From Klebsormidium nitens (Eukaryota; Plantae; Klebsormidiophyceae), in NCBI GenBank assembly GCA_000708835.1, contig DF237145.1:86010-150009 (forward strand): DNA of 64,000 bases, in the 5' to 3' direction. The notes beneath the pieces were generated by a model, which worked only from the letters and a program-made list of their open reading frames with translations, was not told the DNA's origin and made no database searches. The position numbers were made by a program, and so were the translations under genes. This document shows, one piece after another, positions 5,390 through 45,386 of this stretch. Each line of letters starts with the position of its first letter. Position 1 is the stretch's first letter.

Positions 5390-8369
5390 TCAGAACACTT
5401 TGCGTCGACTTGCTTGAAGTTTCCAAAACTTGCGGGTCTCATCAAGGTTGTCCAAGAGCGAATCTATCCCTGTGCATGGTGCCAACGCCGCTAGGAGCTT
5501 GAATAAGGGGATGGTCACTTTCTCGCACCAATAGAGCTGCATTCAATTAAGGTGGAGATAGAGTAAGTGAAGGTCATCGATAACACTGGTTTGTATGTAT
5601 GAGCAGCTTGGAGGGGAGTGATTTGACTGGTGAATTGCGGATCAGAAAGGGTTATAGTCTTCGGTTAACAAGATTTGCCTTTGGCAGGCACCGTATAACA
5701 GTTGCTTATGAATGTTTAGGCACCAGTACAAATGAACTCGCTTTTCTATTTTTGGGTTTGAGAGTATAAAAAGAGACAACCAAGCCGGAGAACTCCGCAT
5801 CGAGATCGACATGAAAATCCTAGAAATTCGACACATCCAAGTCCATCCATATGAGTCGTAGTGCGTTACCTGCGATTGGTACAAATCCGCTTCGACAAGC
5901 TTCGCGCTGGGGGACTCTTTCATCCCCAAGGCCCGCTCAATGTCGATCTGCAGGGACACAGATCTCGAACGGTAAATTCAGAGAAAATCTTGAGTCTCAA
6001 AGATTTTGAAAGGGTTTCGGACAAACATTCTGCTCGCAGCGGCAGTTTGAGATATTTGGAACCGCAATCGAATGAGGTCTCAACAAGCTGCGCCGTAGTC
6101 TCTCGATCGACTCGTTAAATCTCTTCAAGATCGGGCTTACCTGGTTCCGAAACTCGGCGTACAGGCGTGCAACCCAGAACTGCGCCGCCTGCGGTCCCCG
6201 GGCTTCGTTGCCGATGTCAGCGCCTGCACGGTGGGCAGAAAGTGACGTCAAACAAGAAAGAAGAAAAGATCCGTTCTGGTCTCACAATGGAATTCTGATT
6301 AGATGCTACCCCGTTCTATCCCTTGTTTTGATCTGTCAATTTTAATCCAGCGAGGAGGCTGCCAATCAACTTCTCTCAGACGTGCGTTAGGAGGCGAAGC
6401 AAAGATGGAGATAAGTCCGCCTCGAAGGATGCGCAGAGGTCTTCAGCGTCAACCACTTGGAAACGCTTTGATGATGCAGTAAAGCCTATTCCCCTCAGCG
6501 CCTGTACAAAGTTTGCAGCACGCTTTCAACGGAATCTGTGGGCAGGAGCCAGAAAATATGCGTTGACAGTCTTAGGAAAAACGGAAAAGAAGATCACGCA
6601 TGTGAAAGCTTACAATATCACGAGCAGGCTCGCTGAAGTTGCGGATTTTAACGATATCCTTTATCCATCACGCTCAAGCCCTAGGTTCTAAATCCCCTCA
6701 ACCTCTGAACTTTCATACCTCTGGAATCTCAAACTCAGAAAGGAACCGGCAGAGGAACCGTGAGTAAGCAAATGGATCCTACATTTCATGAGCAGGCTCG
6801 CCAAGAAGTTGCGGTTCGACCGGTCCCGCCAGTCGACGCCCATCTCCGCCCACCGGCGCCACTTTTGCAGAAGCGTCCCGTGCCGCGCCATGTCGGTCGC
6901 GCCGATGCCTGCCACGTCAGCGGGAATTCAGCATGACGTTATCAAAGATCACGCGCAACGCGTGAACTTTACCTGGGGCCGGCTTTAAAGTCGCGTGGAG
7001 GTCGCGATCGAAATGTTACCATAAGCTGATGTTTGCGCAGGAGCAAGCGTGCGACCTCATCTCGTGCAGCCCTGATTTGAGGGACTTTGGAGGATTATTC
7101 CGGAGAGCCATTTTTCACGGCGAAACTGCTTTGATATGAGCCGTGAGTTCTGCTTTCGAGATTGCGCAGAAAGAAGTAGTGCGCTATAGTAAGTGCGATA
7201 CAAGTCCTGGCAAGCAACCGTCCCAGGTTTTCGACCAGATTAAGTACATTTACTTACCGCTTAGAATCAACACGTCCCTCCCAATCGAACGAGCCAATTG
7301 CTTTGGCTCTTCACTTTGAGTGCCTTGCGCCTTAGGGGAAGCACCTAGACTGGCGCAATCGTCCAACTACGTCATCAAGCAAGGCGTCAAGAGGGAGCGC
7401 CGACTCACACTCCGCCACGGTGTCAAGCAGCCTCGCCCGGTCCGATTCGGACAGCTCGCTCAAGATGTCCGTTTCGGATGCGCTCAGCAGGGTTTCGAGG
7501 TTTTGAAAGTGGAGGCGCTCGTTGGTGCTCGTCGGGAAGCGCTTCGCGGCCGGCGCCTGAATCTCCTTCAGGAAGTCGTTGGTCAGGCCCACGTGGCCCA
7601 GGTCGTGACACAAGCCTGACGTCATGGAAGAAGTTAGAGCCGTGGCTTGGAACCGGGGGGGAGATTTGGCATAAGAAGGAAGGAAGAACATTAGCTTGAG
7701 ACCTGGTACCACTTGTAAAAAGAAAAGTCGTGGTTCACTTGGGCCAAGTCCTGACACAGACCTGATCACCCGGATTGGCGGATTCTGAAGGTAACATAAA
7801 CATAAGGCTTCCGAAATTCAAAGGCATTTATCCACCCACTTGCGATGGGCACTGCGTCGACCTTGAGCGGCACTTGTGCGCGCATCTGGATGTCGGCTCC
7901 AAAGCACGTCCCTACACTCCGAAAGCACGGACCGACTCACCCGCGAGCAACAGCAGACCATCCCGAAGTTCTCAGCACTCTAGTTGTCGCCTTAAAACCC
8001 TGTGTCAGAAAGCATCCGGAAGCCCAAGCCTTACAAAGTTTTAGCGCGCTTACCCGCGATCAGCACGGCCGCGACCTCGAGCGGCTCCAGTTTCGCGCGC
8101 ACCTCCGGCCAGCCTAGAAACACGCACAGCATCTGGACCACGTTGTACACGTGGCACATGTTGTGGTACGGCACGCGGTCGTCGTGCTGCGCGTCCACGT
8201 GGCGCGCGAAGCGCTCGAGCAGGCACGTGTCGATCTTCAGCGCGTCCAGCGCGCCCGCGGCGACCATCAGGCTGACGATGCCAGGGACGAGGTCGCCCCG
8301 GGTTAGTGACAGGGCGTCGACGAGGGGGAAACCGAGGGCGGGAGAATCGCCCGAGGCGCTGGAAATTGC
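5390..8369 (-). CDS. Class I cyclic-nucleotide phosphodiesterase catalytic domain (C-terminal part of the receptor gene)
   Basis: Spliced exons give PYHNMCHVYNVVQ, LIAGLCHDLGHVGLTNDFL, TNERLH, CIGATDMARH, LLMKCADIGNEAR...EFRNQ and YQSQLYWCEKVTIPLF...LLDNLDETRKFW. These match the PDEase_I motifs YHNxxH, HDxxH, ATD, ADxxN and the invariant Gln. Confidence 0.9.
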
Positions 8370-11300
8370 TGCGGTGGCAAGGAAAAAGTTAAGAGAGAAG
8401 CTAAGAGAGAAGCGAAAGCCAACCTCCCAATCGAATTGCGGCGATGGACTCGAGTCTCGTCGAAACTTTCTACAACTCAATTCAAGCAGAACGGGCAAGT
8501 TGGACCGGTTGAGAAACTCCTTCTGCAAAGACTACTTACAAAACGAGTTTCAAGCTGGCACTGAGCTGAGGCAATCTCTTTCGATTCTTTCTGTCAGAAG
8601 AGAGCGAACTCCTTCTCTATTCATGCCTTTATCGTCTTTTTCCAGGCGTCTCAATGATCGCAGTAGCTTGCTATCGAGGAGAGCCCATCAATGAATCTGG
8701 AAGTCCTCTCTTCTAACTTAAGCTTCTTTTGGTCTCCGCTTACCCGTTTCAGGCAGCGGAGGGGAACCCCCCAGCGTGTGCTTCGGCCCCGTGACGAGGT
8801 AAGAGATCATGATACCCTTGCCCTTGATGTGAATAGGCTCTCGCTCCTGGCAGGAAAAGTCTTCCGCGATCTCGTCCCGGGTCTCCTTGGAGATATTCAC
8901 ACAGCCCAGCACGCCGTTGGTCTCCATGCGGCTGGCAACGTGCGGTCATATCGTGTCAAGGAGAATTTCACAACCCTTTTCAGAGGACGCGTTAACGGAT
9001 AATGAATGTGACAGAAGGGTTGCGGTTGCCCGAAAACAGTCCGAGTCTTGGAAAGAAGAAGTGTCAGGGCATTCCTGAAGCAGCAGACTTAACTGTTTAG
9101 CGACAAGCGGCGTGATAAACAGGCCCCATGTGCTTGACATTCAAAGAAGATTGAAAAGAAGCTTGCTGGGTATCGAGAGCGAGACTTCAGAATCATTCCG
9201 ACTGCCGAAGCGTCCTTCAGCGTCAATTTCCCCCTCCTAACACAGACATCATATCAACAGACCAGGGGGCAAGGGAGTGCTTCGGAGGATGTATTGACTG
9301 TGTCGCCCCAAATATCGTAGATGAACTTCCGTGTTCCTGCAGAACATGTAAGGAAAACCCTCAGCCCTGCTTGCCAATCGATGAGTCCTTGGAGACGATG
9401 TAAACATAAATGCCCGCAATATTGTACTATTCGGACCGAAGACTTTAGAAAGTGGGCGACCATGATTGGCGCTTATTCGCCAGGTGCCGGCGTGCAGAAA
9501 AGGCACGAGTTCAAGAGAACCAGACCAGCAAAACTCAGCATTCATGCTGGCACGCCGAGAAAGCCTAAAGTCTCGACAAACATCACCCAATCCAATTCCG
9601 GAAGTTCCTTTTCCGCCCCGCCCCATGCTTAAACAACGCACGGGCTTGAGATAAGTGTCCATCCCGAGTGGTTGCTACACACAAGCAGACTCGTTCATGG
9701 TAAATGCTAGGGTGTCTCTCCACCTGTAAGTTCAACAACCACCGGCCCAGTTTTCAAAACATGGCGCGCGTCGATGCTGAAGCCAAAGATAAGGGCAAAA
9801 GCACGCACTTCTATCACCGTCGCAACCAATCTGATAAGAGCAGAAAGGAAGCACAAGTTTCCATGACCGAACCCAAATATCACAAGCAACCCCGGACCCG
9901 TATATCCACACCAAAGCGCGCGTCATGCTGGACCCCAACATGAAGCAAATCTTTTTTACTGTCATCAACGCAAATAACGAGAAAGAAGAAGAGGGTTGTA
10001 CGTAACCCAACCCGATTATCACCTGTAACCCCTGCCACGACCGGCCCCGTATTTACACCGAATCGCGCGTCGATGCTGGACCCCAGCATGAGGTTGATCT
10101 GCTTAATGGAGAACGCCAAGTCGAGCGCCATTTGCACCGTCGCGTGCGCGTGGTCTAAGCGCTCGCGCGGAAGCCCGCACGCGGCCATGTAGCCGTCCCT
10201 GTGCAGAGGAGTCTAGTGTTTAGGCTTTTAGGGTTTTAGGGAGATGGACCGTCGCTTGCGCGTGGTCTAAGCGCTTGCGCGGAAGCCCGCACGCGGCCAT
10301 GTAGTCGTTCCTGCGCAACACGGTCCGTTTTGCGCGGCGCCTCCGTTTTACGTGGTCGTTTCCTTTGCGCCGTGTCACAATGAGCGTCTTGATGTGGTGT
10401 TACCGTCATATAACATGCGGGCGATCGAAGAAAGGCGGTGTCCTAGGATCACTAAATAGGCGTGCCCCGTAAACGAAATCTCCTTAATACTAACGCGTTT
10501 TAGCGATCCTTCTGAGCTTTGCCTACCGTGAGAAACGCTCTTCTTTCCTTCGACCCCTTGTCTTTGTCAGCTTCTTGATCCTTCTCAGAACATGCTTTCC
10601 TACTCCTTTCTGCTCTTGCTTCCCGCTACTTCTGTTCTTTCACGTTCATTACATCTGGATCAATTACCGCTTAAACGATCTGCAGTCCCAGAAGATCTTG
10701 ATTGACCATGTCTTTCATACGTTGAGAAAGGTCGAGTTGTTGAAAAGTCATCTCGACGGACTTACCCAATGGTCTTGATTTTCTGCACACGAACAAACGA
10801 AGGTAGCGTCAGGAGCCAAATCAGCAGTGACAAGGTGAGGTTTGCAATTCCGCTGATTGAGATCAAAACCGATACAGCTCGCTGTGACCTATCAGCAACC
10901 ATTCTTGAATTACCCAGCAATTTACTTTTGTGCTCCCTTGTTAGTCTCAGTTCGGCAATGCTGGGAACCCGTTTCAAACAGAAATGAACACCGTTCTATA
11001 AGGACCACGAGGAGACTACGGCTCACAAAACTGATGAGCTGTCAATCGCTCGGGACAAACCTAATATTCTTACCTCTCCGCCGTGCCGCCCCACGATGCT
11101 ATCGAACACAGCATGCTGCAAAGGGGCGAGAGGAAATCAGCTCCTTATGCGACGGGCACGAGGAGACCGGAAACAGAACCTGAATCATTTGCAGGAGGAG
11201 AGCAACAATGTCGAAAGAAACATATGAACGCGCAGAAAGATGGAGACGAAGGGCTGCTAAAGCTCGCACTCGTCATGTGCATTTCATTTTACTTGCTTTG

Positions 11301-14300
11301 ACAGAACCGGACAGAAGGTATTGCACAGACCAACCAGGGTCCTCACTCCAGACCGCAGTTCAAAACGCCCGCCTCAACTCACCCACTTTCAACCAAAGCC
11401 AAAAAAAGAAACCGACGCTTCTCGAAAACACCAGTTTGCGACTCACGATCATGGAGAGCTTCCCGACGAGTTCTTCCGGGCCCATGGTCGCAGACCACCG
11501 GGTGAAGTTCTTGATGTCCACAAAGAGGATGCTCGCCCGGTGGAAGCTTTCCGCGATTGACGGCGCGCTCCACGGGTGCCGCGACTCGCGCAGGCTGGAG
11601 AAGACGTCCGTCGCGCTCGGGCCGCGCGTCTGCAGCTGCTCGATGACCTTCGCGGGTAAGATGTTCAGAAGCAGGTCCTGAAAAACAAAAAGGGTCTGGA
11701 CCTTTGAGGTCTAGAGTCTATCCCCTTGCTCATTCGTTGTTCCATTGTGAAAGTAGCTAGTTGCTGGGTGCACGGTGCTGTCATAGAGGGACGGGTGCAG
11801 TCGCGCTCGAGCAGGCGTCTGAAGCAGCTTGAGCTTTCGCAGGGCAAACGTTGAGGCGGGCGTCAAAATACCAACATTTCGTAGTTCGAGGGTCTCCCCT
11901 GCCCTCTTCATCACTCATGAAAAGCTATAGCAAGCTTCCACTCAAGACTTCGTCTCCGGCCGCCTCTCCACATGTGACGTCACGCTCACGTCGGCCTTGC
12001 GCTTGCCCTCTGCCAGCTGGCGGTTTGTCTCCTCCATGGACTTGGCGTGCGCCCACCCCTGCAGGTAGTACCGCACCGCGTACCAGCACGCCGCGGCCGC
12101 GCTGCCGCCCACCAGCAGCGCAACTAGAGCGAGGACGTCCTTCCGCTCGTGCCTGCAGCCAAAAAGTAAGATTCCTTGAGTTCTACGTCGTTATTGGCAG
12201 CACGCCGCGGCCACGCTGCCGCCCACCAGCGGCGTAACTAGAGCGAAGACGCAAAACGAAAGAACAGCTCGAAGACGCAGGTGGACGGCAGTTGCAGCGT
12301 TGCACAGCCCCTTTCTAAACGGTAAAGTCGATTGCTCCTCGTCTAGACTAGACTGATTCGCAAGCTTGAGGAAAATGCTACTTCTCACTAGAAAAGAACA
12401 CTCTCGATTTAAACGGTCACGCCACTTCTCACAAAGGGGACCGTCCTCTCTCGCATCAGACGGTCAAGCTACTTCCCGCCACTGGAGGGAGGATCTTGAA
12501 TTAACGCTAACGCTACTTCTCACCAAGGAGGAAAACTGTCGGATCGGACGGTACCGCTGTCTTTTACCAAGGGCATATAATCTTGTTTCAGACGGTCACG
12601 CTACTTCGCGTCAAAGGGAACGCACTTCTTATCAAGGGGGAAAGATATCGAATCGGACGGTAACGCTGTTACTCACCATGGGGGGATGATCTCAAATCGG
12701 ACGGTCAGCGGCTCAAAATACTTGTGATGGACGTCCGCCCCCACGATCTCAACGGACGCACGTCCACACTGATCAAAGGAGAGAGAGAGGCGAGACGGGT
12801 CGGCCCTGCAAATTGAAAGGACCGTTCTTTTAGAGTAAAAGCAGGGGAAATGGCGGAAACAAATTCGCAGAGAAGATATCATTCGCTGAAAACTAGGAGG
12901 CCGCTAGGTTGATGTTGCACGATGGTTGCACGAGCATCTTGATGTGGCCTTTTTGTGGCTCTGTGTTTCTGGTCAGCTTTGCTTGGAGCTAGGTAGAAAC
13001 AAGAAGGGCTCCAAAAGCTGATTTCTCCAGAAAGCACAGCATCGCGAACGACTCCTTACGGCGTTGAAACTCGGATCGTCAGCTGAGCACCTGCAAAGAG
13101 CGATACAAGGCTGACCAAAAGAGAAGGCTACCTAAAAGAGAGGTCTAGCATAGAACGCGCATGCGAAAACAGCTCATCTTTGCCTCCTCAACGAGGGGAC
13201 TTTTCCTGTAATAGTGGTCAAAAAGTTTAAGGAAATGAGAAAACCTCACAGCAAGCTGGAAGGGTTTCTAAGGTTGCGCATTGTCACCTCGGGAAAGGTG
13301 CCCAGGACTTTTCTTCCCGGTCTCCCGGAACCAGAATCCGGTAGGCGTAAGCGGGATTGCAACCGGGCAGTTCGTGGTCCACCGGGCGGATGTCTAGTTC
13401 TACGAGCTGGAGCCTTCGAACTCTCTGGAGAAAGCGTACCCCGGCACTTTTTCAGGCAGCAGAAACTCTCCAGCGGAATGGACGGGTACACTGAACGTGA
13501 ATGTCTGTCGAAGCGTTGAGTCTTGTAGACTACCTCACTGAGAGGAGGTCGCTTCTTCAAACCCTTCCAGAGAAGGCCGTCAGCGCAGGGGAAACCTCTT
13601 TTGAGTGCTTTCCTCGGTACCACAAACATGAATTTCGATGGGTTAAAGTGCTGGACAGATGCATCAAGTGGAGGTCGCCTCTTCACTTCTGTTTCGTCGG
13701 GAATGTCTCGGCACTCCGTGCGCGTATAGCGGAACGGGCGCAAGCACAAACTCGAGCCCTGGCAGAGTTTCTGACCGTTGCGTGACGTCAGCAGAGCTTG
13801 GACGTCTCACCAGGTCCCCTGCTGGGCTGACTCCGTCTTGGCCCGAGGGCTTGAAACGGATGCGGCGGCGCGGAAGAGACCAAGAACTGTCGCGGGGGAA
13901 GCGAACGGCCACTTCAGTTCCCGAAACTTTCAAAGATGCAGACTCGCACGATTCGGCACCAGAAATTTCAAAATTATGCCGAAACGACACCGAGAGCCGT
14001 TTGCGGTGCAGGATATTCGCAAAAGCGCAGGGTTAAGCTCAGAGATCTTCCGCCAAAAACTCCATCTCCCGCTCGCAGTAGTGCCGAGTCCCTCGATGCG
14101 GAAGAGATGCCGAGTCACATAACGGACGGCTTTCCAGATGTCCTCATGCGGGCACCTCTAATTCAACGGACGCTTTCCATCTCTGTAAAATGGGGTGTCT
14201 TTCTGTTTTACGTACAACGAAGCGTCCCACAAAGCCGGTAGAGGTGAATGTCTTTGTCTGAACATCCCTATCGGAACGCTCTCACCTGAGGAACGTAAGG

Positions 14301-17300
14301 CCCCCTGGGCGCCCCAGCACCACTGTCCCGTCGCCCAAATGACCGACCGAGTGGACCACCCGGTTGGATAGGTTCTCCCACCGGTCGTGCTGCTTGAGCG
14401 TGTTCACCCAAACCCGGCCGTCGTACGCCCCGGCGCCCTCGCCGTTGCAGCCCGCCCAGATGATCCCCCGTGAGTTGACGCCCTGGGAAAAAGGGGTGTC
14501 AATAATGTTAAGAGACGACTTTTTCCACTGGTCGTGCTGCTTGAGCCTATTCACCCAAACCCGCCCGTCAAACGCCCCGGCCCTTTCGCCGTTGCAGCCC
14601 GCGCAGGTAACGCCTCGGGAGTTGACGCCCTGGAAAATGGGGGTGTGAGTAATAGATCAAGAAACAATCTTTGTCCCACCGGTCGTGCTGCTTGAGCGTA
14701 ATCACCCACACCCGGCCGTCAAACATCCCGGCGCCTTCGCCGTTGCAGCCCGCCCAGATAACGCCTTGCGGATTGACACCATGGGAGTGAAGGGGCGCGA
14801 AAAAGTGATACGACGACGGCTTTGATGCAATCGCGCTTAGTAAGATCATCAAAGTTGGTCGCCAATGATTCTAAAGTCGCATTCTTAGCCGGCCTAGGTG
14901 ATGCTTCGAAGATTGAATACCTGAAAGAAGGGCGCATCCACCTTCGATACATTCGAGCAAGTAGGCTCCTACGTTCGTGCTCTGAGACCGAAGCATCTTT
15001 TTAAACCACTTTCAACAAAGGCACGACTTCGTCGAGCACGGATCATTCGCCAATCATACAATTTCACCGCACCAGCCGTTGAAATCAACCGACTTTCCAT
15101 GGTAGTAAAGCCCCATTTTTCGCTCGGTTCAAATCCAGTCGCCTTACCAGTGACCGGACGTCGTTCCCCGGGAGGCCGTCCGCAGGCGTAAACGTCCGAA
15201 CCACTGCGCCGCCGTCGATGACCGCGACGCCCATTTGGGTGCCCGCCCACAGCCGTCCGATGTCGTCGTTCACCAGCGCGTGCACGTCCGGGTCAGGCTA
15301 CAGCGGATTCGGAGGCTTCCAAATTCAGACGCGTTGAAGGCTTGTACGGACGTTTGTGAAGAGTGTTCTGGACTCCTTTCAGAGGTGTGTACTGGACGCT
15401 CTTTCTGATCATTGTGCCGGACGCCTTTCAACGTGAATAAGGGACTCTCAGAACGGGCACCGGGTGGTTTGCACCGTGTAGGAGACGTAAAGTTGTTGAC
15501 GGGAGGAACTGAGACTGAGATCTAGGATGTTTGACGCCGGTGACAGATCTTCACGGTTTCGTTATCAAACGCCTTCCTTTGCGAAGACATTCCCTCCTCG
15601 TTGGTGATGAGCAGACACGACTTGAAGTGGTGATGAGCTTGAGTTGGGGAGGTAGCAGGTCATCGAGGCTTTTTGGGCGATGTGGCTTTTTGGGCGGTGT
15701 GACATGAAGGCTTTTCAGCCGCCTTCCCGATGTGGCGCGGAAGTCTGGATTCGCCTTCAAGGCAATCAATGCATCCAAGGAGCGCAGTCCCCTTGTTTGC
15801 TTTCGGTTCGTTTTCTATTTGCCGAGAGGGAGAAGCTCCTCCAGTATCTGAGAACATGCCGATGTCACCTCGCGGCGCAATCTGCTGACGTCTGAATACG
15901 CAGCACTCACCAGCCCGTCTGCGACGGTGATATTCCGGACGGCCGTCGTACCGTCCGGCTGCGGACGGAGCTGGGAGATTCCGCTGTCCGTGCCCACCCA
16001 AATGCAGCCGGCGCGCTTGTCTAAGTAAGAGAACAGATGCCAGACGTCAACTCAACGTCGTTGCTTCTCCTTGACCAAAGCAGTGCTCACCAATCACAAT
16101 CTCCGCGCTGCTAGCCTACTGAGCATCACACGACACTTGCACTGAATCTGAAGCTGACGGACTAATTCCAAACCAAGGCGCTATCAGGTAACTCTATGCT
16201 TCCTGAATCACTGCCCACCGCAAAACCTGGTGTCACGAGGAATATTTTTGATCTGTGCCTTCAATCTAGGGTTCCTGACATGGATCCCAAAGTTCCGTGC
16301 GTTTTTCGTACGGGACGGTGGAGCGATGTTCAGAAGCGGGTTTGAGGAAACCCAAGGAGGATTTTAAGAAATTCTGTAAGTTCACCTTCATGCACAGCCT
16401 GCACGATGTTGTTGACCAGCCCCTGTTCCGTCGTGAACCGCGTCGCGGCGCGGCCGTCCCAGGCGACTACACCGGTCTTGGTGCCGAACCTTAACAAGTA
16501 ACACACGGAAGCTTTAGTCCTGGGCTGGTTGGATCTTCCCTCTGCGCGCTACCTGCTTCCCTAATAGTCCCGAGAAGCTTGAAAACACAAATTAGATGTG
16601 GTCGCTTGCTGAAAACGAGTCTACGTGGTTTTTTGAATTCCGGTCCAGCTAAAATGCACGAAAACCCTCCTGAGAATTCTGTCTTTATCGAGGCCGCTTT
16701 CCGAAGAGGAGACTGTTGGAAAGGCGGCCGACAACTGGATTCGAAAAGGAGCGCTCGAATTGCGCGCACAAGGGAGAAAGCCCTCACCATACGACGCCGT
16801 TCGATGCCGCACAGATGCTCCGGACGGCGTGCCCCCTGATGGCGTCCGAATCTAGAGCGAGGAACTTCCCGTCCTTCACGGAATAGTGGGCGGCCCCTTG
16901 GTCGGTTCCAACCCAGACGGTGCCCTGGAAAAGTTGCGTTTCATGAGTATCTGAGATCGAGATTCCTTATAGAGCGGATTATGTCTCCAGCCTGCCAAAG
17001 AGCAGATTGGTTGGAAATGAAAAAATTGCCTCAGAATTCATTGACAAGCAGTACTTTAGTGGCTTGTCAGTCAAGACAAGCAAGAAACAGACTGGTTCAT
17101 GCCCCATTTGAACGTCCTACGCGCACTATTAACGTCAGACCTTCGAAAAGGAAAGCGGAACCGTCATACGCTCAGCTCGATATTCATAAAAGCAAGACGG
17201 CAAAAGGGGAACTCTCAATGGATCAGCACGTATGCACATGAGGCGACTCGCCGGTCCTATAAAAGCAATTACCAGGGCTCTTGACATCAAATTTTTAAGA

Positions 17301-23509: not shown

Positions 23510-24573
23510 AGACTATCTGTGGTGATGTAAGTAGCCGGCCCAACCCCCCTCCTCCAACTTGGACACATTGGAAGGTGCTCCCCTATGATGCACTCTTGAA
23601 GGGCAGGTGTTGCTTGTAGGGTCTTCACCCTCTGCATGGAAAAGCGGGGCGGGACTCAAATCAGAAGCCAAAAAGATAAAGGCCAAGAACTCCTGATTTC
23701 CATTATTACCTGGTGTACCTGAAGTACGTAAGCATAGCAACATAAAGCAACAATTTTCGAAGAGCTACGCCTGCAGTGAACATCATTTTGCCCAATCTGG
23801 AGTGGGCAATGAGCACATTGGAGAAACATTCTGCTCGTCAAGCCAGAGGGGCAAAATTGGTCCATAACTTGTTGTCAGCTTTGTCCTTTTGGGCTGGTGA
23901 AAAGGTGGTATGCTTCTGTGTGAAAACAGGATGTAGTAATCTACTACCTGCACCTCACCCCGTCATCCTTTTCTCAAGGGGCGTCTGGGGCTGAGCTGTT
24001 TTCCATTTAGCAGCATTTATTTCCAGCTTGACACCGGACATTTTGCAAGGCTGTCTCCGCTGCTTTCATTGAATCGCCTATTTGAAACACCAGGTTACTA
24101 TTTCAGCTGCCAGCCGGCATAAGAATTCTTGAGCTCTAGTTTTACATGCAACTGTCATCGAACAGGATGCCATTGAGTGCTGATTGCTTTAGACCTACTT
24201 ACCTGAGGCAGGAGGCCCGGTGATCCCTCCAAAGAAGCAGAACTTCTGTGTCCCAGGTTATGAACAGATTTGGCTGGGCAGTTTAGTTCAGGGGCTTGGA
24301 GTGTTCAGTGCAATGCAAGCGGGAGAACCTTCTGAAGTTGGGAAAGAGGTACGTTTTCCATCTGCCATTGCCTTTGGTGCTAAGCAAAGTGCAAGCTGGA
24401 AAGATCTACAAGTCTGAATCAGGCGCCAACCAATCAAATACACCTACCGTAGTAGCTACATCTTTAATCTGCAGCAGCTAAGTATCTGTCCAACACAGCC
24501 CTGTAAACCTGCAATGATGAGAGCTTGCCAGTTGATAAGTTGGCCAGTCGCTCGCTCAGAGCAGACTGCAGCG

Positions 24574-24593
24574 CGGCGGGCGGCCGCCCGCCG
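24574..24593. other. Perfect 20 bp all-GC palindrome in the divergent intergenic region
   Basis: CGGCGGGCGG|CCGCCCGCCG is its own reverse complement. Confidence 0.9.
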
Positions 24594-25683
24594 GGCGCCC
24601 GCACAGGTACTTCAAATCCTCTCCGTACAATCTGCGGTTGACCGATGCCGTCAAATGATGCATGCGGCACAGAACCTACCGGTATGAAGGGCTTCCACCT
24701 CAGCATCCCGCAGATTTGACCGATGTTTTCGGACTCACACGTATATAAGGGCAGTGGTGCTAGCAAAAATGCTGTTGGATAAGTTAAAGCAAATCCGCTG
24801 CAAATTGCAATCCACCTAATACAACTGAAATCACAGCAACCGTTTGCTGCTGGAACGGTATACTCATTCCATATTCCACGACACCTACATAAGCGGTGGG
24901 CGGTAGGCTGACCCGGGGTGGGTGTGTGCTGTTGAGTAACCGAGCGCCGTACAGCAGTTGAACAGAGACAGGATCTTGGCCGTTGGACTTCATCGGACGG
25001 TGCTGAAAGCCATGCTCAGAAGGAGTCTTGAAGGATTAAGCAATTAGCAGATTCAGCACAGTTACTCGTTCTATGCTCCCGAGTCCCGGTCACTGGACAG
25101 TTCCGAAATGACCGGGCGGCCGGAAGGAGCTAAGCAAGGAGTTAAAGGAGTACGGAGAAAAGTTGTGATTGGCCGCGCGACTCCTTTGCATCTTCTCAAA
25201 ACCAACTTGGCTCTCTTCTCAAGCCAGCTCTGATGAGAAAGTCATCCAATTCGAGCGCTTCCTGTTGGCTGAGTTGGTCCTTTTTAGGCAAGCAACTTGC
25301 ACATCGAAAGTGCTCCCAAAGCGCTTCCTGAAAAATGGTGAATGCAGCAAGCGGATCAATCGTTTTCTTTTCTTCTTTGGTGCTCATCATGTAATCAGCT
25401 GTAACAACCAGTCTCAGACTATGATCGAGCAGAGAGACGAGGTTTGAGAATGTCGCAAAAAGGACAAGTTCGAAGCTCCGGTTTGCTGGGGTTTTACTTT
25501 ACATCATAGCGCCATCGCTTACAGCAATTGGGGTGAAGTTCCGGGGTGCAGTCTTAGCTGGTGGTCCTTTGGGTGGCCATCACTGCTTAGCGGCATGCAC
25601 CTCAAATGTCAGGATCTACTAGTCCTGATGCATGGCAGACTTTCTGTCAATTGACTTGGGGACGCACATCGCGATCAGTCACC

Positions 25684-28600
25684 ATGGCAATTGCACAGTT
25701 GGTACCAAGAGGGTCCTTGGCTTGCCGCCAAGACTTGCTGGCGTCACATTACATTGCAAGCAGAGAAATACACTGGAGATCATCCAACTTCACCAGAAGA
25801 TCTCAGCCACTGTCGGAAACAGGGCAATGCGCGCCTTTGATTGCAAGAAGAACGCAGCTTGCAACGTTCTCAGCAAAGGGGGCATCATGGAAGATTGGCA
25901 CATCAAAAGCCACAGCTCAAACCGAAACCCAAGTCGTCTGCCCAGGTCCAGATACTGATGAATTGGGGACATATACACGGGTCTTGGCAAAACGCCAGCT
26001 TTACCGGCAGAGAGGACGTCGCTCAAAATGCCCAGCCAAGCGTCGACCAGCGCCCACCTGGGCTGCGGAAGGTGGCACCGCGCAAGTGACCTCAGCGGGA
26101 CCCGGTGCTGATGTCATCCGAGGTGAGCATCTAAACCCTCCTGTTAAGGTGACTCTCCAATCAAAGTGTATTCCTTTGTCAGCTTAGACTGGCCATGCCT
26201 TGTTTTTCTTTAGCCTTGGAAAGTAAGGTTCTTTCATCCTAAACTTCTTGAGATGTGCGGAAAGTTCTCAGGAAGGTGTCAGGCGCATCTCTCGATGAAT
26301 AGGTTGAAGTAGCGACGTTTTGCGTTCTCGCCGTGCATTCAAGCAGGCTATATTGGCCATACTCCTCCCTTTGGTCTTCCCGCCTGGCAGTTCACAGTTC
26401 AGCCACCTTCGCATTGCAGGCCGCACCTAGTTCTTTCAACAGTCCATAAGTGATGAACAGTCTTAACTGACGCAAAAGCCCATACTGGCCTGGATCCAGT
26501 ACCAGTATCTGCAACCCAGGGCCACCACCTAGCCCTGCGACTCAGTCAAGCAACTCTGCTTGTTGCCAAACCTTTCAGCAAGACTCTTTCGAATGCTATT
26601 ACAGAGGCGGATGCATCTTATTTCTTGATTTGTAGCAAACATTCGCTGCTTAGATGCCCTGATCGGTTGCTGCAGGTCCATGCACGCACATTGCAAAAGG
26701 AACTTTCCTTTCTGAGAACCAACGGAAGGAGGTCGCTGAAGTGTTTGCACATCATGGGGGCAAGTTGATTCGTTCGGGACAGCTTCTCCAAGCGCTAGCG
26801 GCGATCGGAGAACGCTGGTCGAAGCAAGAGGTAAAGGAATGGATCTGTTGCTTGTGACGAAGGTTGTCAGAGTTCATGAAGCACCCTCCGACTGGAGAAA
26901 ATCCTTCTGTTGGCCATCTTCAAAAGTCAGCCGCTCCAACTCCAACCACGCCAACTATGGAGATCCTTGCAGGGCAATGAGCGCTCAAGATTCCAAGAAC
27001 AGGCCTGTGTGGGCACATCTGTTGAAAAGGTTCGAAAGGCAAAGAGTCGGAGGATACCTGTCAAAGATACAAGACAGCAATGCCGAGTGGGAGGGTTGAT
27101 TTGCTCACTTCGTTCCGTGAAGCAGCTCGATTTCCAGCCCTTTTGACTAACGGCGGTTCAGATGTTGGAGAATTGGTGATACTCGACGCAACCAATTTTA
27201 CCATCAGAAAGTGTGCTTTGAATCGGGTTGTGATCTAGTTCCATTGATTCGACCCTCTGCCAACGCGTGTCAATAGTTAACTCGATCCGATGCCTGATCG
27301 CTCTGTTAAGCCAATGGAAAAGTTTGTTCGTCCGAAGCAAGTCTTTGCTTCAACGTCCAGGTTTATCTGTCTTGCTTCATCCTTCCCCCGTGCCCTCCAT
27401 CGAAGGTCTGCCTTTGCTGCGGCTTTCAGACTGTTCTTAAGCTGGAACCGCTACTTGTCCAAATTCCCATTTCGCTTTCCACACGGGCAAGTTTCTCAGT
27501 TACTGATATCAGTCACAGTCCCCTAAAACATACTTCCACGCTCTAAACTGGAAAAACCTCGTCTTCTCGCTGCCTTATCCAATCCTGCGACCGTTTCGCA
27601 GGCCGAAAAAGCGCTGCACGAAGCAGGGGGATCCCTCGACAGCGTCGATGCCCTGGACCGTCTGCTACATGACGTCAGCGCCGCGGCGACAGCTGTCCAA
27701 ATGTGCCTTCCCGGAAACGAGGAGAGTACCAGGGTACTCCGCCCGCTTATGTCCCGGCGGGTTTATAAGCGGGGGGAAACGCTGGTCAACCAGGGTAAGG
27801 CTCGTTCGAAACGCTCTAAGCTTTGTCGCGGAGTTGCTGAGGAGTCCAGCAAACCGGAGACTCTGGTCCGACTAGAACGGATTTGCGGCAGCAAAAGCAC
27901 ACTCAAAACCTTTTGAAGCCCTGTCTGCACAGCCGGAGAGTTGTTTGCATATGATGCGAGAGAGCAAGCGACCGACTTGGACCGCTTAAGCAGCCGTCTC
28001 GTCACAAAGGCTCGAATATGTTCTGCAAGAAAACCAAGGACCAACTGCGTTTTCAAGACAGAAGTCGGAAGCCTCTTCTGTAGCTCCAACTCGATTCACT
28101 TCTGAACGCCAATCCGTCGCCCCCTTTCGCAGGCGAGATCGGAACGGAGTTCTTCGCCCTCGCGGCGGGCTCCGTGTCCGTAATCAAGGACGGCCAACGG
28201 ATCGGGGGGATGCGCGCCCCGGACTACTTTGGCGAGCTCGCGCTTCACACGCAGGCGCCCCGGGCCGTCACCATACAAGTAACGCTCAAGCTCTTGCCCA
28301 GCTTTGCGTTACATTCGGATTTCTCTTTGGTACTGCCGCTGAGGGCTTCCGGCGAGCTCGCGCTCCACATCCAGCCAGTCCGGGCCGTCACCATACAGGA
28401 AACGCACAAGACCTACGCCAAGCTGGGCATTATGTTCAGAGTTCCCTTTCAGCACTGCCGCCGAAATTTGCCGAAGAGCTTACGCTCCGCACAGAAACGC
28501 TCCATTCATGTAATGTACGGACTGCGCTAAGAGCTTGGCCTTACGCTTACGTTCGTTGCGCGAGTTCTTCTTTATTCACAGGCGCCCCGGGCCTTCACGA

Positions 28601-30748
28601 GACGACTAAAATACGAGGTAGCCAACGGGCCTGGCGTTACATTTAGCTTTTCTTCCCAATCCACCAATTGAACATGAACTCGCGCCTAGGAGAAAGACAT
28701 GCGCCAACAATACTGAAGAGTCAAGTGGACGTTTTGAGTTCGCTTAATGGGGCCCGAACGGCGCCTACCCTTGTCATATGCCTGTAATGCTTTTTGGCTT
28801 TGATTCCGCGCGCTTCCGGCAGGCCGCCGATGACGTCACAGTGTACGTCTTGCGGGAAGCCGACTACGCGAAGCACATCAAGGAGCAGAACGCGGACAAG
28901 CGCGCGAAGTACGGCGCGTTTCTGGCGTCCGTGCCCCTTTTGAGTGAGCCACGTGTCTTAGGCCTGGCGATAGCATATGATGTGCTGCAGCTTATGAATG
29001 CTCCGAACCGCCACGAGGTCTGTCCTCAGTGAATGCAATTTCGAGAGGAGTATGGAGAAATTTGTGATACTCTGTTCTTTTCTGGACGAACACACAGTTA
29101 AAAATTGACAGCGGCTGTCTCGAAAACGCTCTGCGATTGAAGGCGAAACATAGATTCCACATGAAGCAGCGCTATTGAACCTTCAGTCCCGTCTTTAGTA
29201 GCCTAACAGGGAACCTTACAATCTGCTCAAGCTGTTACGCGTACGGGAGCACCAATTTGTAAGACCCTGAATCCCGAGCTTTAGTAGCCCAACCCTAAAT
29301 CAGACGAATCAGAAGCCACATTTTTCTGGCCTGCCAGAGGACATGGAACCGTACGACCGACTGAAGCTGTGCGACGCGTTGAAGGAGCAGCAGTTCCAAG
29401 ACAACGAGCTCATCATTCAGGAAGGAGAGGACGGCGCGCGCATGTACATAGTTACCGAGGTAAACCCACTCTTAACCAAGGGTTAACCGCCTGCATTAAA
29501 GTACGTCGTTAGGAAGGACAGGAAGGGGCGCGTACCGTGGTACGTCTGTACACGACATATTTACGAAAATGAACCCATCTTAACCAAGGGTTAACCGCGT
29601 GCTGCTCACAAATCTGCAGGAAACCAGGAACCTTTCCGTTTGCAGACGTGTTAAAAACGGAGTCTGAGGACGGTTTTTCACGTCAGCACGTTTGTCTTTG
29701 CAGGGGGAGGTCGTCATCGTGAAGTCATTTGACAGCAAGCAGCCGGTGCAAGTGGCGGTCATCAAACCAGGTGGGTCTCATCGCCGTTTTCTCTGACGTG
29801 GCTCCGTCTCTTCCGCGTGCTCTCGTAAATAGCACACACACGTTCAGGGAGCAGCCTTTCTCCTAAGATCTGCCTTAAGAAAGTAGGGCAGTTTAGAAAA
29901 ACGTTTGAATCTCTGGGAGTCACCCGACGAGTTTTTCTCGAGGCGCTCGACTGTGCCAAGCCAGAAAGCTCAACTTCGAAGCCCGCAGTGTTTGCTTAAA
30001 AGCCATCTAAAATCCTGATTTACCGCCCACGTTAGGGGAAGTCCGCTGTATCAAGATTGGAAAAGGGTCATCTTCCATTTTGAGAGCGAGCGGCGAGCTC
30101 CGGAGCCGCCAGACCGTCTGCTTTGAAACCCCATTCGGAATTCTGAACCCCTGACTTACGACACAATTCGCTTATGGAATCTCGTTGGATAGCGCTTCAT
30201 CGTGAAGAGCGAACAGCCAGCTGATGAGCTTCTTCTGTAGATGCATTGAAAGAATCGAAGCTCGCGACCATGATCTCCGCTCAACCCTCTGAAACGACCT
30301 TGTTCCCAAATTCCTTGGGCAGGGGGTTTCTTTGGAGAGGCAGTCCATCGTGCGCGGCGAGCTCCTGAGTTGCTGAACTATCATCGCCCCTTCTGTGAGC
30401 TTTTGCCATCGAACCTCGTTTTAGTACGTCTCTTGCGCAGGCGGCTTCTTTGGGGAGCGTTCCATCGTGAAAAGCGAGCGGCGCGCCGCGAGCGCGCTCT
30501 GCCACGGCCCCGTCCAGTGCGTGTCACTGGACCGGCTCTCGTTCCTGCGGATGCTGCAAAGTCAGGCGACGTCCGGTATCATCCAGAATTCCGTCAAGGG
30601 ATACCGGACTGCGGCGGACGCTAACCAGGCGAGCGAACGCCCGTCATCTTCCCGTCCGAAATCTCAAATCTCAAATCTGCTCGAGATCATGTCCTTTCCC
30701 ACACCAGTTGGGTCTCCGAAAGACAGCGTCTTTAGGAAGCTGCCCTAG
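25684..30748 (+). CDS. Protein with transit-peptide-like N-terminus, degenerate calmodulin-like EF lobe and two tandem cNMP-binding domains (may continue into the downstream CCD)
   Basis: Phase-consistent exons 25684-26122 (upstream in-frame ATG at 25606), 26676-26830, 27602-27794, 28133-28278, 28823-28943, 29338-29459, 29704-29770 and 30441-30748. Motifs: LSENQRKEVAEVF...ALAAIGERWSKQEAEKAL; YKRGETLVNQGEIGTEFF...FGELALHTQAPRAVTI; FQDNELIIQEGEDGARMYIVTEG...FGERSIVKSERRAASA. Confidence 0.85.
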
Positions 30749-31077
30749 ATTAAGCGGGCGGCGTCGGCTTGAAAACTTTGCGCAATCGTACAGAGTTTCT
30801 CTTCTCTGGATGTATCCAACCCCTGTTTGGAACAGCACTTAACACCTTTCTGTGGACAGGCCAGCTTGAGACTCTCTCTGAACACTCCTTTTTCGAATTC
30901 TGAAAACTTAGGCTCGTTCGGGCGGCATCCTTCGCACATCTCGCTCAAAGAAGAGGACCCAGTTTGTTTTCTTCTATACGGATCTGGAGGTCCTGCTCTG
31001 GCGACTTCCAAAGCAGCGGACACGCTTGTATGTCGCCCTTGTATGTCGCCATTTCTGAGCGTTCTTGACGCTTGCAG

Positions 31078-34000
31078 GTGTATACTCTGGGCGCTTTGGT
31101 CTCGCTCCAGCTCCTGGACGCGGCCGCGTATGAGGACGAGGCATACGCTATGGAGGTCGTCGAGGGGCACGTGCCGACCGATCTGGACGGCGTCCTGTAC
31201 AGAAACGTACGTTCGAGATATCCGCACCTCAAATCATCCAGTTTGTCGGAGAGAGCGAATTCAAAACTAGGGAAAGATCTGTCTACCTACGGAAAGATCT
31301 GTCTACCGATCGCTTCAGCGAAATGATCTCGACACTCTCCGTAGTAGCGCCGGCCGAACCCTGCTCAACAACCGCGCCTCTTGATAAGAGCTGCGAATCC
31401 GACTTAGGCGTCTGGCTCTCCGAGGTATTGAAGCTTATCTTCTGCGTTCGTTCTCTGTCACGCTCGACAAGAATAAGATATGGAATATGTCAAGGTAAAT
31501 TAACATGTTGGTTGAGGGCCTTGTGAGGACCAGACCAGAATTCTTTAACCTTTTCGCTGCAGGGCCCCGCCTCCTTGAAAGGAGTGGGCGGTTGGCCCCT
31601 GAACAACCCGGTAGACGGGGACGGCTGTATCGCCGCGTTTTCCTTCTCCCGAGGTAAAGTGTACCTGCGGAAACGGGTCGTGCGCACGTCCGCATTCGAG
31701 CGGGAGAAGGCGACCGGGAAGTCGAGCTCCAGGGGGGCATTTGGCACTGTGAAAGACGGGGGGTATTTGGCAAATCTGCTGGACCTGCGTGTGAAGAACG
31801 CCGCCAACGTGAGTTATATCAAGTGAAGCGTCGTCACAAGTCTGCGCGGATGAAGGTAGACCATCTCTTCTTTCTTCTGGACGCGCATGGAAGGTAAACG
31901 TTATGATGAAAACAAGTAGGGTGCAAAAATGTTAACTTTCTACCGGGGCGCGCAGGCAAAGTAGAGGGGTTACTCCGTTCTTGAGCAGTCTACGAAAGCT
32001 AGCGTGGACGGAAATGGTAGAATCGACCTAGCAAAAGAAACCTTCGTTCCTTTCGAAAGCAAAGTCTGCCGGAACTCCACTTCAAACCGTGGAGTTAGAG
32101 GAGAACAAACGTAAGCTCTCAAGCTACACAAGTTGACATCTCTAATCTTTCACTTGCAGACCAACGTAGTGTTCTGGGGCGGTCGGCTGCTCGCGCTCTG
32201 GGAGGCGGGGTTACCACACGAGTTAGACCCCGAAACCCTCGAAACCCGGGGAGTAACCGACCTTAACGGCGCGCTAACCAGTGTGATGTACCCCGTGTTG
32301 AGATGGGTGGACCCGCCGTTCCAGCCCGCGTTTGCGGCGCACCCACGGATCGATCCGGTGAAGAAAAGGTGGGAACTCCGTCCCTGTGTTTGCAAGTTTG
32401 TTTTGACGTTCCTCGGTCAAGGAAAAACCCTGCCAAATTTTTCACATTCTTGCCTTGGGGACCGTTCATGAGCTGGCAGGTGTCTCTTTTGGCTTCGCTT
32501 CGCGGATCGTTCGGTGCCCGGATGAGTGCGTTCTCTCCACCTTTTGACTGCGAAAACGAATCAGTTGATTCGCTACATTTATTATTACATCGGAATCTAG
32601 ACAAGTTTTTGTATTCTCTAGCCTCCGATTCATCTTTGCTTAAGCTTCCAGCAGACGGGGATAAGCTGCAAGCGGATCGAGACCTTCAATGAAAATTTCT
32701 AACAGCATTTTGAAAAAACATCTCAATCGAATAAAACAGAGAGTCATCAATCTATAAGCGCTTTAGGTCAACCATATCTATTTTGTGCCTTCTGAACTGT
32801 TTACGGCTGTATCGCTCAAATTGTGACGTATCGGCCCCACAGGTTCGTCAGCTTTGGCGCAACCACCTTCCCTCACGCTTTGCACGACCGAATGCGCGTG
32901 ACGTGCTATGAGTGGGACGCCGACTGGCGGCTGGTGTTCACGCGCTCCGTGTGGGCCCCATTCACACTGCTGCACGACTTCTGCATCACGCCCAACTACT
33001 ACGTTTTCCTGTACACCCCCGGGAAGATGGACCTGCCGAAGTGAGTGGCGCAAGTGTGGGTTCCGTACAGTGGGTTTGAAAACGCTGGAATACTAGAGGC
33101 GTTCAGGCTTTGAGGATCAGAGGGATTTAGCGTCAGGCGTGAGAGGCGTGGAGAGGAAGAAGCCGAAATGAGGGCTGATTTTTGGGAGAAGAAGTATACG
33201 ATCCGGATGATCTCCTCTGGTCAGGAAGCGTTTCCGCGGTCAAGGAGTCTTTCCATTCTCCTCTTTGACCAGTCGCTTTGCTCATACCCCTAGGCTTTCC
33301 GAAGACTCGTGAAATCATTCTCAGCGCACTCTTATTCGGCGCCCTCTTCAAACTCGGCGCCCTTACTGCACGTCAACCTCCTTAGATCTTTCAGTCTTAT
33401 CACAGATTCATACTCGACCCGAAAGCTGGCATTGCGGGCGCGGTCAAATTTAGCAACACGGCGGGGGGGGAGATCATGCTGGTCTCGCGGCATCACCCGA
33501 CGGCGCCCCCCCAAACGTTCAAAACGGCGCCGCTTTCCGCGCTGCACCACGCGAACGCGTTCGAGGACGGGCTGGGGAACGTGGTGCTGGACACGCTCAA
33601 ATACATGGTGAGCTCTCGAGCGTTGACGTCACTTCGGACGAAACAGAGGTCTTGGGTGAGATTTACCGAGATGACGTCACTTCTGACTTCACACAGGTCG
33701 TGGTAAGGTCTCCAGGAATAAATCACTTCTGAAGTCACACAGGTCGTCTTGCGCGGGCAAAAAGTGTACGAGGCACAAGCTGGAGGGGTAGCTCCTTGCA
33801 TTCGAACCATGCAGTTTGTTTCGATCAGAGTATCTGACCTTGGTGAGTCGAGGTATGCCCCGCTTTCCTGACGTCACAAAATGCCGTACGAAACGCTGAA
33901 GCCGAACCGTTCAATGGCGCGCGCGGCGGATCTCTATGCATCATTCTTGCAAAGCAGCCAGCGCCCCCAATTCAAACCTGTTCTCGTACGATCTTTTGTC

Positions 34001-35379
34001 AACCGATTCGGCTTCTCATGACGTCACGGTGACGTGGGCAGGATTTCCTCCCCTCGCAGAGGATCCCGATGCAGTACTTGCGGACTACGTCGGCCGACTC
34101 CGCCGCTTATCCCCCTCTTGAGTTTCTGCCGGCGTCGAATGTGGTCCGGTTGCGGCTAGACCTAAATACCAAGCAGACGACGATCGAAACGCTCGACAAG
34201 CGGAACGGCGAGTTTGCCGCGATCCACCCGGAGCGGGTTGGCTACAGTGCTCGGTTCATTTACACCGCGTCATGTCAGGTAAGCGCCTCTTCATTTTGCC
34301 TAAGGACATCGGATGCAAACCCCCGGTTGACGGTTCGGGTTTTGATTGGCTTGCGGCAGAATTGCCGGCTGAACGGTTTTCAGGCTTTCAGAGCTTGCAA
34401 CAAAGCTCTCAAGGAACCCAAAAAAACCTAAGACTGATCTTTAGAGCAGCTTAGTGCGGGCCTTGAAAGGACAGCAGGCGTGCGAATGTATTAGCTTCTT
34501 GCCCATCGTACGGGTGGAAAAGTTGTAATTGGGTTACCGCTCCCAGGCTTTGAACCGTACTTTCTATGCAACTTGCTGAAGCTGGTTCAGCTTCTTCCAA
34601 CCTGCTGCCCACGTCACGGAGACGTCACGGAGACGTCACGGAGCTTTACGGGTCTCTTGCATCGTTTCCCAAAGTGCTCATTCTAGTTGTCCGCCCACAG
34701 GTTCCGGAAGGGGGCGCGCTTTTCGACGCGCTCAGAAAGGTCGACACCAGCGGGAAGACCCCCCCGCAAATCTGGGGGGAGTCGCCGACCGTGTATGTGG
34801 GGGAGCCCGTCTTCGTGCCACGTGGCGGGCAAAGAGTGGGCGCGCCGTTTGAAGAAGATGCGGGCTGGGTGCTCATTCTACTATACGATACTAGATCGTT
34901 GACGACGGACCTTGCTGTGTTTGACGCCAAGGTAAGGCAGTCCGTTAATTTGAGCGCCTTTGATGGAATTATACGCCGATGCTACCAATCTCGTAGTTGC
35001 GTTGCGTTTCGCAAGTCAAATGGTTCCCTCCCTTTACCTGACGTCCAACTTGTTTTATGTTTTTCAGTGCTTCACTGCTGCGCTTCCAAAGCGGAAATGG
35101 AGAAAAAGTTTCTTGGAAAGTACGTCGACCAATTTTGCCGTCTACCTTTGATAACGTAGTGAGCGAATTCTGATGAGCAGGGCCAGTAACCGGCCTACAA
35201 TATGATTTCGGCGTTTTGAAGTTTTGTAAAAACGGCAGCTGGCTGATCCGACTTTGCAGGACATAACGAAAGGACCCGTCGCCCGGTTGAGGTGCCGCCA
35301 CAACATGGCGTACGGTCTGCACGGCACGTGGGCCGCCCGGGAAGACTTGAACCGGGGTAGAGGTGCCTTTTCCGGGTGA
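31078..35379 (+). CDS. Carotenoid cleavage dioxygenase (RPE65/CCD family, CCD7/cyanobacterial ACO-like), CCD-A; lacks its own upstream ATG
   Basis: Exons 31078-31206, 31563-31808, 32160-32368, 32843-33040, 33406-33607, 34042-34278, 34701-34931 and 35260-35379 are all phase-consistent. Motifs: EGHVPTDLDGVLYRNGP, DGDG, KNAANTNVVFWGGRLLALWEAG, four Fe-ligand His (AAHP, LHDF, HHANAF, GLHGTW), GEPVFVP and EEDAGWVL. Confidence 0.92.
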
Positions 35380-44339: not shown

Positions 44340-45386
44340 CTTCGCCTCTTGGCGAACGTCCTAAGATGTATGCAATGCTATTTGCAACGTCGATTCAGCA
44401 AGTGACCAAGCGCAATGCCGTCCTCTCCAAGAAGATAGACGCCTCCGGTGAAGCTGTCACCTGGCGACCGTGGAAAATGCTGGCAATGCTGCTGCAAATT
44501 CTACTCAATTTGGCTGCGCTTCTGCCCAAGCTGGCTGCTGCTTGCTGCTGTACGAAACCAGACTGAAGGCTTCACAAAATGGTGAATGCTAGAGTGGCTC
44601 TAAGAGAACTTGATTCAATCCCAAGCTGCCAAGCATTTCTTACGTGATTGCCGATGTCATGATCCAATCTGCAGTTTGTTCGACTCAATCACTGATCCGC
44701 AATGCATATGGATGAGCGGTCAACGTTTTAAACGTTGGATGAACGCGTCTGGTCCTTTCACCGCCGTTCCAAAGTCAAGTCAAGTCGAATTGCCTAGTAC
44801 AGGAGTAGTACAGCTACCCTAGTACAGGAGTCTGAAGCAAGATACAGCAGAGCAAGGTACTGAAAATATGCACTGTGACCATTTTTTGTGAAGCTGGAGC
44901 CTCGCATCCTGTGCCGACGGTACATAACACTGTATCTAGGTATACTTACGTAGGTACCCGGTACTGCGGGGGGCTTTGTATCTAGGTACTTGAAAGGAAG
45001 CGTACACGAGGGCGTCAAGTTTACAACCGTCTTCTAATTCAAGGAAGAGCGCGATACAAAACTGAGTCCCGAGAAATGTGCCGCGCTACATGCGGGATCT
45101 GCCAGATTCCAGGAATGATCGCCGACGCCAAACAGCCATCGGACGGCTTTAGTAAGGCTATAAAGGGTGCTCTGAAGCATCCTACGGCTGCAGAAAAGTA
45201 GGGTAAGACTACATGCCTGGTATTCTTGCAGTCGTGGACCCACACAAGCATAAACTCGGAGCTGCTCGCCTTTCCTGCAATGTATCCTAGGTACCTATTC
45301 CATTGTGCATGGTTTGCAGCTTCTGCAACGCAGAGAGGAACGGTGGTTGCTGAAAAATCGGCTGACAAGCATTGAAAGGCGTCACC

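Follow-up and report, generated by a model that had tools for sequence, protein, structure and literature searches.

Divergent fusion genes in Klebsormidium nitens: a predicted receptor-type adenylyl cyclase-phosphodiesterase beside a carotenoid oxygenase with cAMP-type binding domains

Do genes that make, break and read the same second messenger form a working unit when they lie side by side in a genome, or are they simply neighbours? The question is raised by a locus of the alga Klebsormidium nitens, contained in a 64,000-nucleotide stretch of contig DF237145.1 (hereafter the window), which is intron-rich eukaryotic DNA with a GC content of ~0.52. The original prediction placed here a minus-strand gene joining an adenylyl cyclase (AC) to a phosphodiesterase (PDE) and a plus-strand gene with tandem cyclic nucleotide-binding domains, diverging across ~2 kb, and it proposed that writer, eraser and reader of cyclic AMP (cAMP) are co-located. 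Both genes are present. The minus-strand gene (5390..23509, 29 exons) encodes a sensor, transmembrane segments, an adenylyl cyclase and a phosphodiesterase in a single open frame of 1687 amino acids (aa), and the plus-strand gene (25606..35379, 16 exons, 1020 aa) combines tandem cyclic nucleoside monophosphate (cNMP)-binding domains with a carotenoid oxygenase. From start codon to start codon the spacer measures 2096 bp (23510..25605). All family assignments given below, whether by Pfam, solved-structure or homology matches, were made exon by exon and not on spliced proteins.

Here we show that a cAMP writer and eraser and a cAMP-type reader are indeed co-located and that this arrangement is conserved, the head-to-head order being found again on two related contigs. 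One of these, relative A, is a 99 kb JGI metagenome contig reached via a 77-aa fragment, of which 63 kb were examined; relative B, another contig of that sample, matches A at ~79% identity, introns included. We read the locus, with a probability of about 0.6, as two fusion genes that diverge from each other and are selected separately, a receptor-type cyclase/PDE beside a cAMP-type oxygenase fusion. By default they are taken as neighbouring genes, each with its own promoter.

The structure of the plus-strand gene rests in large part on transcripts. RNA contigs from four runs in four studies, carrying two species labels and >99% identical to the window, were placed on 25450-31449 and represent spliced RNA, with eight joints that each recur in 4/4 runs. 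They define exons 1-5 (25606-26122, opening with the ATG at 25606, 26676-26830, 27602-27794, 28133-28278 and 28823-28943) and exons 6-9 (29338-29459, 29704-29770, 30441-30628 and 31078-31206), and they run on into an exon beginning at 31563-31564; exons 10-16, up to the stop codon at 35379, come from exon chaining. With Pfam applied to single exons of this strand, two match cNMP_binding and four match RPE65. The link between the two kinds of domain is a GC-AG intron (30629..31077, +), which joins the cNMP-binding half in frame to the oxygenase half and is seen in the RNA contigs of 4/4 runs. Its joint was first placed at 30625>31075 with an ambiguity of 4 nt; a 3-nt shift gives GCGAGC..TTGCAG and leaves the frame open, and the residues on either side are conserved in relative A. 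The cNMP-binding domains and the oxygenase belong to one fusion transcript.

Each binding domain carries a recognisable phosphate-binding cassette. That of domain 1 (FGELALHTQAPRAVT, 28228..28272, +) is identical in relative A, and that of domain 2 (FGERSIVKSERRAASA, 30449..30496, +), read from the translated exons, is conserved there. In the spliced translation the cassettes appear within GELALHTQAPRAVT and GERSIVKSERRAASA, corresponding to PRAV and RRAA, and both (GELALHTQAPRAV and GERSIVKSERRAA) retain the Glu, the Arg and the Ala after the Arg, again with conservation in relative A. For domain 2, the only one searched, the closest solved chains are those of the CNB-B domain of PKA RI-alpha (E 2.3e-7). 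The plus-strand protein thus resembles PKA RI-alpha in its tandem cNMP-binding domains and in cassettes with Glu, Arg and Ala-after-Arg, whereas PKA RI-alpha regulates a separate kinase subunit and the domains described here are fused in cis to a carotenoid oxygenase. By these residues the ligand is probably cAMP. The cassettes named in the original prediction, and their agreement with an ATP-type cyclase next door, were recovered on both sides of the spacer; its description of the gene as a cAMP reader holds for the cassettes, but the reader is no free sensor: it makes up the N-terminal half of a protein whose other half is an ACO-type carotenoid oxygenase.

The oxygenase half belongs to the RPE65 family and spans eight exons (31078..35379, +). 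Single exons score 46-61 bits against Pfam RPE65 (PF03055), for which the cut-off is 27 bits, and residues 518-1008 of the protein align at ~35% identity with residues 22-497 of 501-aa ACO-like proteins, which the source databases name apo-carotenal 15,15'-oxygenase. Of the solved chains, Synechocystis ACO (2BIW) is nearest (E 1.6e-14, one exon), and all four iron-binding His motifs, assigned by eye, are found in the translation (AHPRIDP, LLHDF, LHHANAFE and GLHGTW). Synechocystis ACO and its cyanobacterial kin share this fold match and the four motifs with the plus-strand protein; ACO-type enzymes, however, are ~500 aa long and have no regulatory domain, unlike the fusion with its cNMP-binding half. 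Among 180 fetched oxygenase relatives none aligned to the cNMP-binding half, although the short-exon query may miss distant cases. Similarly, when oxygenase exon 10 served as the query of a representative search, the matches (the best 53% identical) included neither a full-length protein from this genome nor a relative carrying the fusion, and no locus was confirmed by scanning metagenomes with the exon of the second binding domain, contig A evidently lying outside that collection. A cNMP-binding/carotenoid oxygenase fusion was likewise not found in the literature, which argues only weakly for its absence. The fused domains probably regulate the oxygenase.

Two further features of the plus-strand protein lie ahead of its binding domains. 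The first 80 residues are Ser/Thr-rich and nearly free of acidic residues in both species, a composition which suggests a transit-peptide-like N-terminus. Residues ~173-290 (26678-27793, +), just ahead of the first binding domain, are 49-65% conserved in the relative and by eye resemble a degenerate EF-hand pair; Pfam was blank on both exons.

To model the minus-strand gene, scores for splice sites and codons were trained on the plus-strand gene and combined with conservation in the relative and with hand curation. Ab initio chaining was tried and rejected; it over-split or mis-phased the gene, introduced spurious micro-exons, overlooked a 17-nt exon and ended on an incorrect last exon. The curated model runs from the ATG at 23509 to the stop at 5390 through 29 exons, with 1687 codons open, and encodes, in order, an N-terminal region, a transmembrane (TM) segment, a weakly Reg_prop-like ectodomain, a second TM segment, a class III cyclase and a class I PDE. 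Beyond exon 1, 27 of the 28 exons were matched in relative A by tblastn and the remaining one, the 17-nt micro-exon, by pattern search, all in unchanged order and on the same strand. Cyclase exons followed by PDE exons on the same strand are found in five genomes.

The class III cyclase domain occupies six exons (8744..11677, -), with two exon matches to Guanylate_cyc (PF00211) at E 9e-13 and 3.5e-8, both over the 21.9-bit cut-off, and with the motifs FVDIKNFT, KIKTIGDGYM, YDIWGDTVN and VASRME in the model. Adenylyl cyclases carry Lys and Asp as their substrate-specifying pair, and guanylyl cyclases Glu and Cys. The domain retains the two metal-binding Asp, the ATP-type Lys (KIKTIG) and Asp (YDIWG), and the transition-state Asn and Arg, so that the ATP-type assignment made in the original prediction is borne out residue by residue in the spliced model; among solved chains, adenylate cyclases 5 and 8 come closest. 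These residues point to a class III, ATP-specific enzyme.

Two unusual splicing features frame this assignment. The adenine-specifying Lys is encoded by the 17-nt micro-exon for KIKTIG (10766..10782, -; AAAATCAAGACCATTGG, flanked by cag and gtaagt), which is near-identical in three relatives (A, B and L013), where it is likewise bordered by ag and gtaagt and differs at one synonymous position. Between GDTVN and VASRME lies an intron (8940..9292, -) with U12-type signals of the AT-AC class, recognised by a 5' end ATATCC and a branch site TCCTTRAC located 10-20 nt ahead of the 3' AC. All of these are seen in four relatives, where the intron opens with ATATCCTC, continues to TCCTTGAC and ends in AC. 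The window copy opens with ACATCCTC, giving a 5' end ACATCC, and keeps the branch site TCCTTGAC and the terminal AC. The motif with the catalytic Asn and Arg requires removal of this intron, and either the assembly has a wrong base at this site, giving the ACATCC of the window, or the splice site itself has changed, which could disable the cyclase of this strain.

Downstream in the same reading frame, as had been predicted for the eraser of the module, six exons followed by the stop codon encode a class I phosphodiesterase domain (5390..8368, -). A single exon matches Pfam PDEase_I at E 1.3e-13, the motifs HNMCH, HDLGH, ATDMARH, CADIGN, EF..Q and QSQLYW (with the invariant Gln) are intact in the model, and the nearest match among solved chains is PDE10A, a dual-specificity enzyme (E 6e-8), so that the domain may act on cAMP, cGMP or both.

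The N-terminal half of the minus-strand protein appears to be a sensor. Exon 1 (22595..23509, -) encodes an N-terminal region of 305 aa that by hydropathy ends in a first hydrophobic TM segment (aa 269-287), and a second TM exon (11972..12152, -; aa 1062-1080) reaches a hydropathy of 1.96 over 19 aa and is 71% identical in the relative. The two segments bracket an ectodomain of ~770 aa, whose exons (12677..22123, -) encode Reg_prop-type propeller repeats and then, by eye, a Y_Y_Y-like stretch. Pfam support for the repeats is weak, at 15-21 bits with one match alone passing the curated cut-off, and Y_Y_Y itself was not detected by Pfam in the ectodomain exons; the same exons are 57-97% identical to those of relative A. 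Repeated propeller blades between two membrane segments are also found in the Reg_prop / Y_Y_Y sensors of bacterial hybrid two-component systems, which are periplasmic (PF07494). These sensors share with the minus-strand protein the position of the blades and a cytoplasmic output domain, but their output is a histidine kinase, as opposed to a cyclase and PDE. A further hydrophobic stretch at aa 5-23 makes this topology tentative. The open reading frame (ORF) of exon 1 extends over 340 codons in the window and 302 in the relative, alike just at the hydrophobic end, and weakly so (blastp E 0.057); a continuous match over exons 1-2 in the relative was rejected, as it passes through stop codons. 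A search with exon 2 found nothing.

Conservation of the pair was followed in several related genomes. On contig A the same two genes stand head to head, with a spacer of ~2.5 kb if the ORFs taken as first exons hold; neither of these ORFs is recognisably similar to the first exons in the window, while every exon beyond the first of each gene was matched, at 49-99% protein identity, with plus-strand exons 2-16 collinear. Introns and spacer of this relative do not align with the window. Contig B again has the divergent pair with a similar spacer, two further close relatives have cyclase exons followed by PDE exons, and in one of these two a separate contig has oxygenase exons after the tail of the exon for the second binding domain. 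At dS (synonymous divergence) of ~1, the ratio of nonsynonymous to synonymous divergence (dN/dS) is 0.12-0.18 in each of five regions, namely the binding domains, oxygenase, sensor, cyclase and PDE. All five domains are under purifying selection.

Beyond the pair, gene order appears to have changed at one point. A desaturase-like gene, with a weak Pfam FA_desaturase match in the relative, lies at 54200-58800 (-) of the window, beyond a second oxygenase gene, and in B (L008, 15330-20360) directly 3' of the cyclase-PDE gene. This placement fits the inversion of a block in which the pair stayed intact and the breakpoints fell just outside, as one event. All relatives are close (dS ~1), and the adjacency of the two genes is seen on A and B and across this one inversion.

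What does the adjacency mean? The original prediction suggested that the genes are perhaps driven by a bidirectional promoter, and on this account a shared promoter would make writer, eraser and reader-effector together. The genes are divergent, and orientation and a similar spacer recur on two related contigs. RNA contigs of the plus-strand gene extend 199-363 nt 5' of 25450, to ~25087 if they are colinear with the genome; the spacer from ~25087 onward is probably the 5' untranslated region (UTR) of that gene, and subtracting it shortens the distance to at most ~1.6 kb. Bidirectional pairs in the textbook sense, however, have start sites <~1 kb apart, compared with 2096 bp from ATG to ATG here, and neither the 2.1 kb of this spacer nor the ~2.5 kb of the relative contains a block conserved between the two by sensitive blastn (best E 2.8). 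ORFs within the spacer match no Pfam family. A shared bidirectional promoter is hence improbable, and so is a co-regulated module built on it. The lack of a conserved element fits better with chance neighbours, that is, genes of unrelated functions that are adjacent through regional synteny, with the nucleotide for the plus-strand protein coming from elsewhere, e.g. a rhodopsin-linked cyclase or a plastid pool. The second oxygenase gene (window 45.4-52.7 kb) is syntenic too in A, the sole contig followed that far, so that conserved adjacency is not specific to the pair and is weak evidence of coupling; the synteny test proposed with the original prediction therefore came out mixed, the linkage being kept on A and B and its weight lowered by a neighbour that is kept as well. 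The transit-peptide-like N-terminus of the plus-strand protein also suits chance neighbours. Set against them are the cAMP-type residues in both genes and the passage of the pair together through the inversion, which counts as a single event. Chance adjacency comes out at a little under even odds, while functional coupling, in which the cAMP read by the plus-strand protein is made by its neighbour, appears doubtful.

A different objection is that the minus-strand gene is impaired in this strain, the T-to-C change at +2 of the U12-type intron blocking its removal and truncating the protein inside the cyclase domain, in which case no working writer or eraser would stand beside the reader. The difference between the window and four relatives at this site is what such impairment would leave, but the remaining frame is open over 1687 codons with no other defect, and an assembly error at one base would explain the site just as simply; we consider impairment very unlikely. 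Several other observations, together with the featureless spacer and the syntenic neighbour, weigh against reading the locus as a receptor-type cyclase/PDE beside a cAMP-type oxygenase fusion. Splicing in the window strain is not assured, since the U12-type intron begins with AC in this genome only. The minus-strand model is a prediction from chaining and conservation. The two cNMP_binding (PF00027) matches score 25.9 and 25.4 bits on single exons against a curated cut-off of 27.5, the domains being split by introns, and the use of Ala or Thr after the Arg to tell cAMP from cGMP is a heuristic drawn from PKA and PKG. Finally, the caution about compartments that accompanied the original prediction stands: because the plus-strand protein has a transit-peptide-like N-terminus by composition, in both species, and the cyclase has two membrane segments, the pair may occupy different compartments.

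In the minus-strand protein, with its homodimer-type class III adenylyl cyclase, a ligand bound outside the cell would tip cAMP inside towards synthesis or breakdown. For the plus-strand protein the likeliest mechanism is that bound cAMP alters how tightly the regulatory half holds the oxygenase and so controls the production of an apocarotenoid, possibly retinal. Apocarotenoids include retinal, which serves the rhodopsins of the alga, and hormone-like signals. A self-contained pathway kept as one divergent gene pair, in which a propeller receptor sets cAMP and that cAMP gates the fused oxygenase to yield retinal or a hormone-like apocarotenoid, is unlikely as a whole. Were it true, it would add a carotenoid-cleavage enzyme as a new class of cyclic-nucleotide effector and would give the plant lineage a concrete cAMP output. 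The oxygenase fusion would make apocarotenoid production a direct second-messenger output, and even with chance adjacency each of the two genes has an unusual, conserved and selected architecture.

There is a long-standing dispute over the role of cAMP in the plant lineage, where CAPE (COMBINED AC with PDE) together with PKA in liverwort sperm provides the best-defined case (PMC11032487). CAPE is known from Marchantia and other streptophytes with motile sperm (PMC5159850, PMC8115329, PMC11032487), and like the minus-strand protein it unites a class III adenylyl cyclase and a class I PDE in one membrane-bound polypeptide of the plant lineage. Its order, however, is an N-terminal PDE, central membrane segments and a C-terminal cyclase, without an ectodomain (PMC8115329), whereas the minus-strand protein runs TM, ectodomain, TM, cyclase, PDE; its identification as CAPE was rejected on this order. 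The same papers report no CAPE in Klebsormidium, just cyclase-like sequences lacking a PDE domain (PMC5159850, PMC8115329, PMC11032487), and the cyclase-PDE fusion described here thus occurs in an alga for which they had reported none. A similar layout is seen in the sex-pheromone-induced bifunctional guanylyl cyclase/PDE of the diatom Seminavis robusta, with two membrane segments N-terminal to cyclase and PDE (PMC4726125). That protein has been read as a cGMP enzyme (PMC4726125), while the minus-strand protein has the ATP-type Lys and Asp and an ectodomain of ~770 aa.

The second carotenoid oxygenase gene occupies 45400-52710 (+) of the window, ~10 kb downstream of the fusion, with RPE65 matches at 46277-46486, 51335-51949 and 51964-52707. 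It was considered as a recent tandem copy of the fused gene and rejected as such, the identity being 24-38%. Between the fused and second oxygenase genes of relative A lies an element bearing a reverse transcriptase (weak RVT_1 match; L005, 10560-12930), which is absent from the corresponding place in the window.

Introns of the locus also hold decaying partial copies of the edges of neighbouring exons, e.g. extra ..DYMAACGLPRKRLDH and GVNSRG.. units. In the window these copies occur on the minus strand at 9700-10400 and 14550-14830, and others are found at L003 17040-18160 and, in relative A, as a copy of plus-strand exon 8. Exon chaining was misled by such copies inside introns.

The CpG observed/expected ratio is 0.4-0.8 in spacers and gene 5' ends (23000-27000, 36000-47000 and 58000-61000) and ~1.0-1.2 in gene bodies. 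Within the spacer of the pair it is 0.24-0.47 over 23510-24500, on the side of the cyclase-PDE gene, and 0.8-0.9 over 24510-25600, on the side of the oxygenase fusion.

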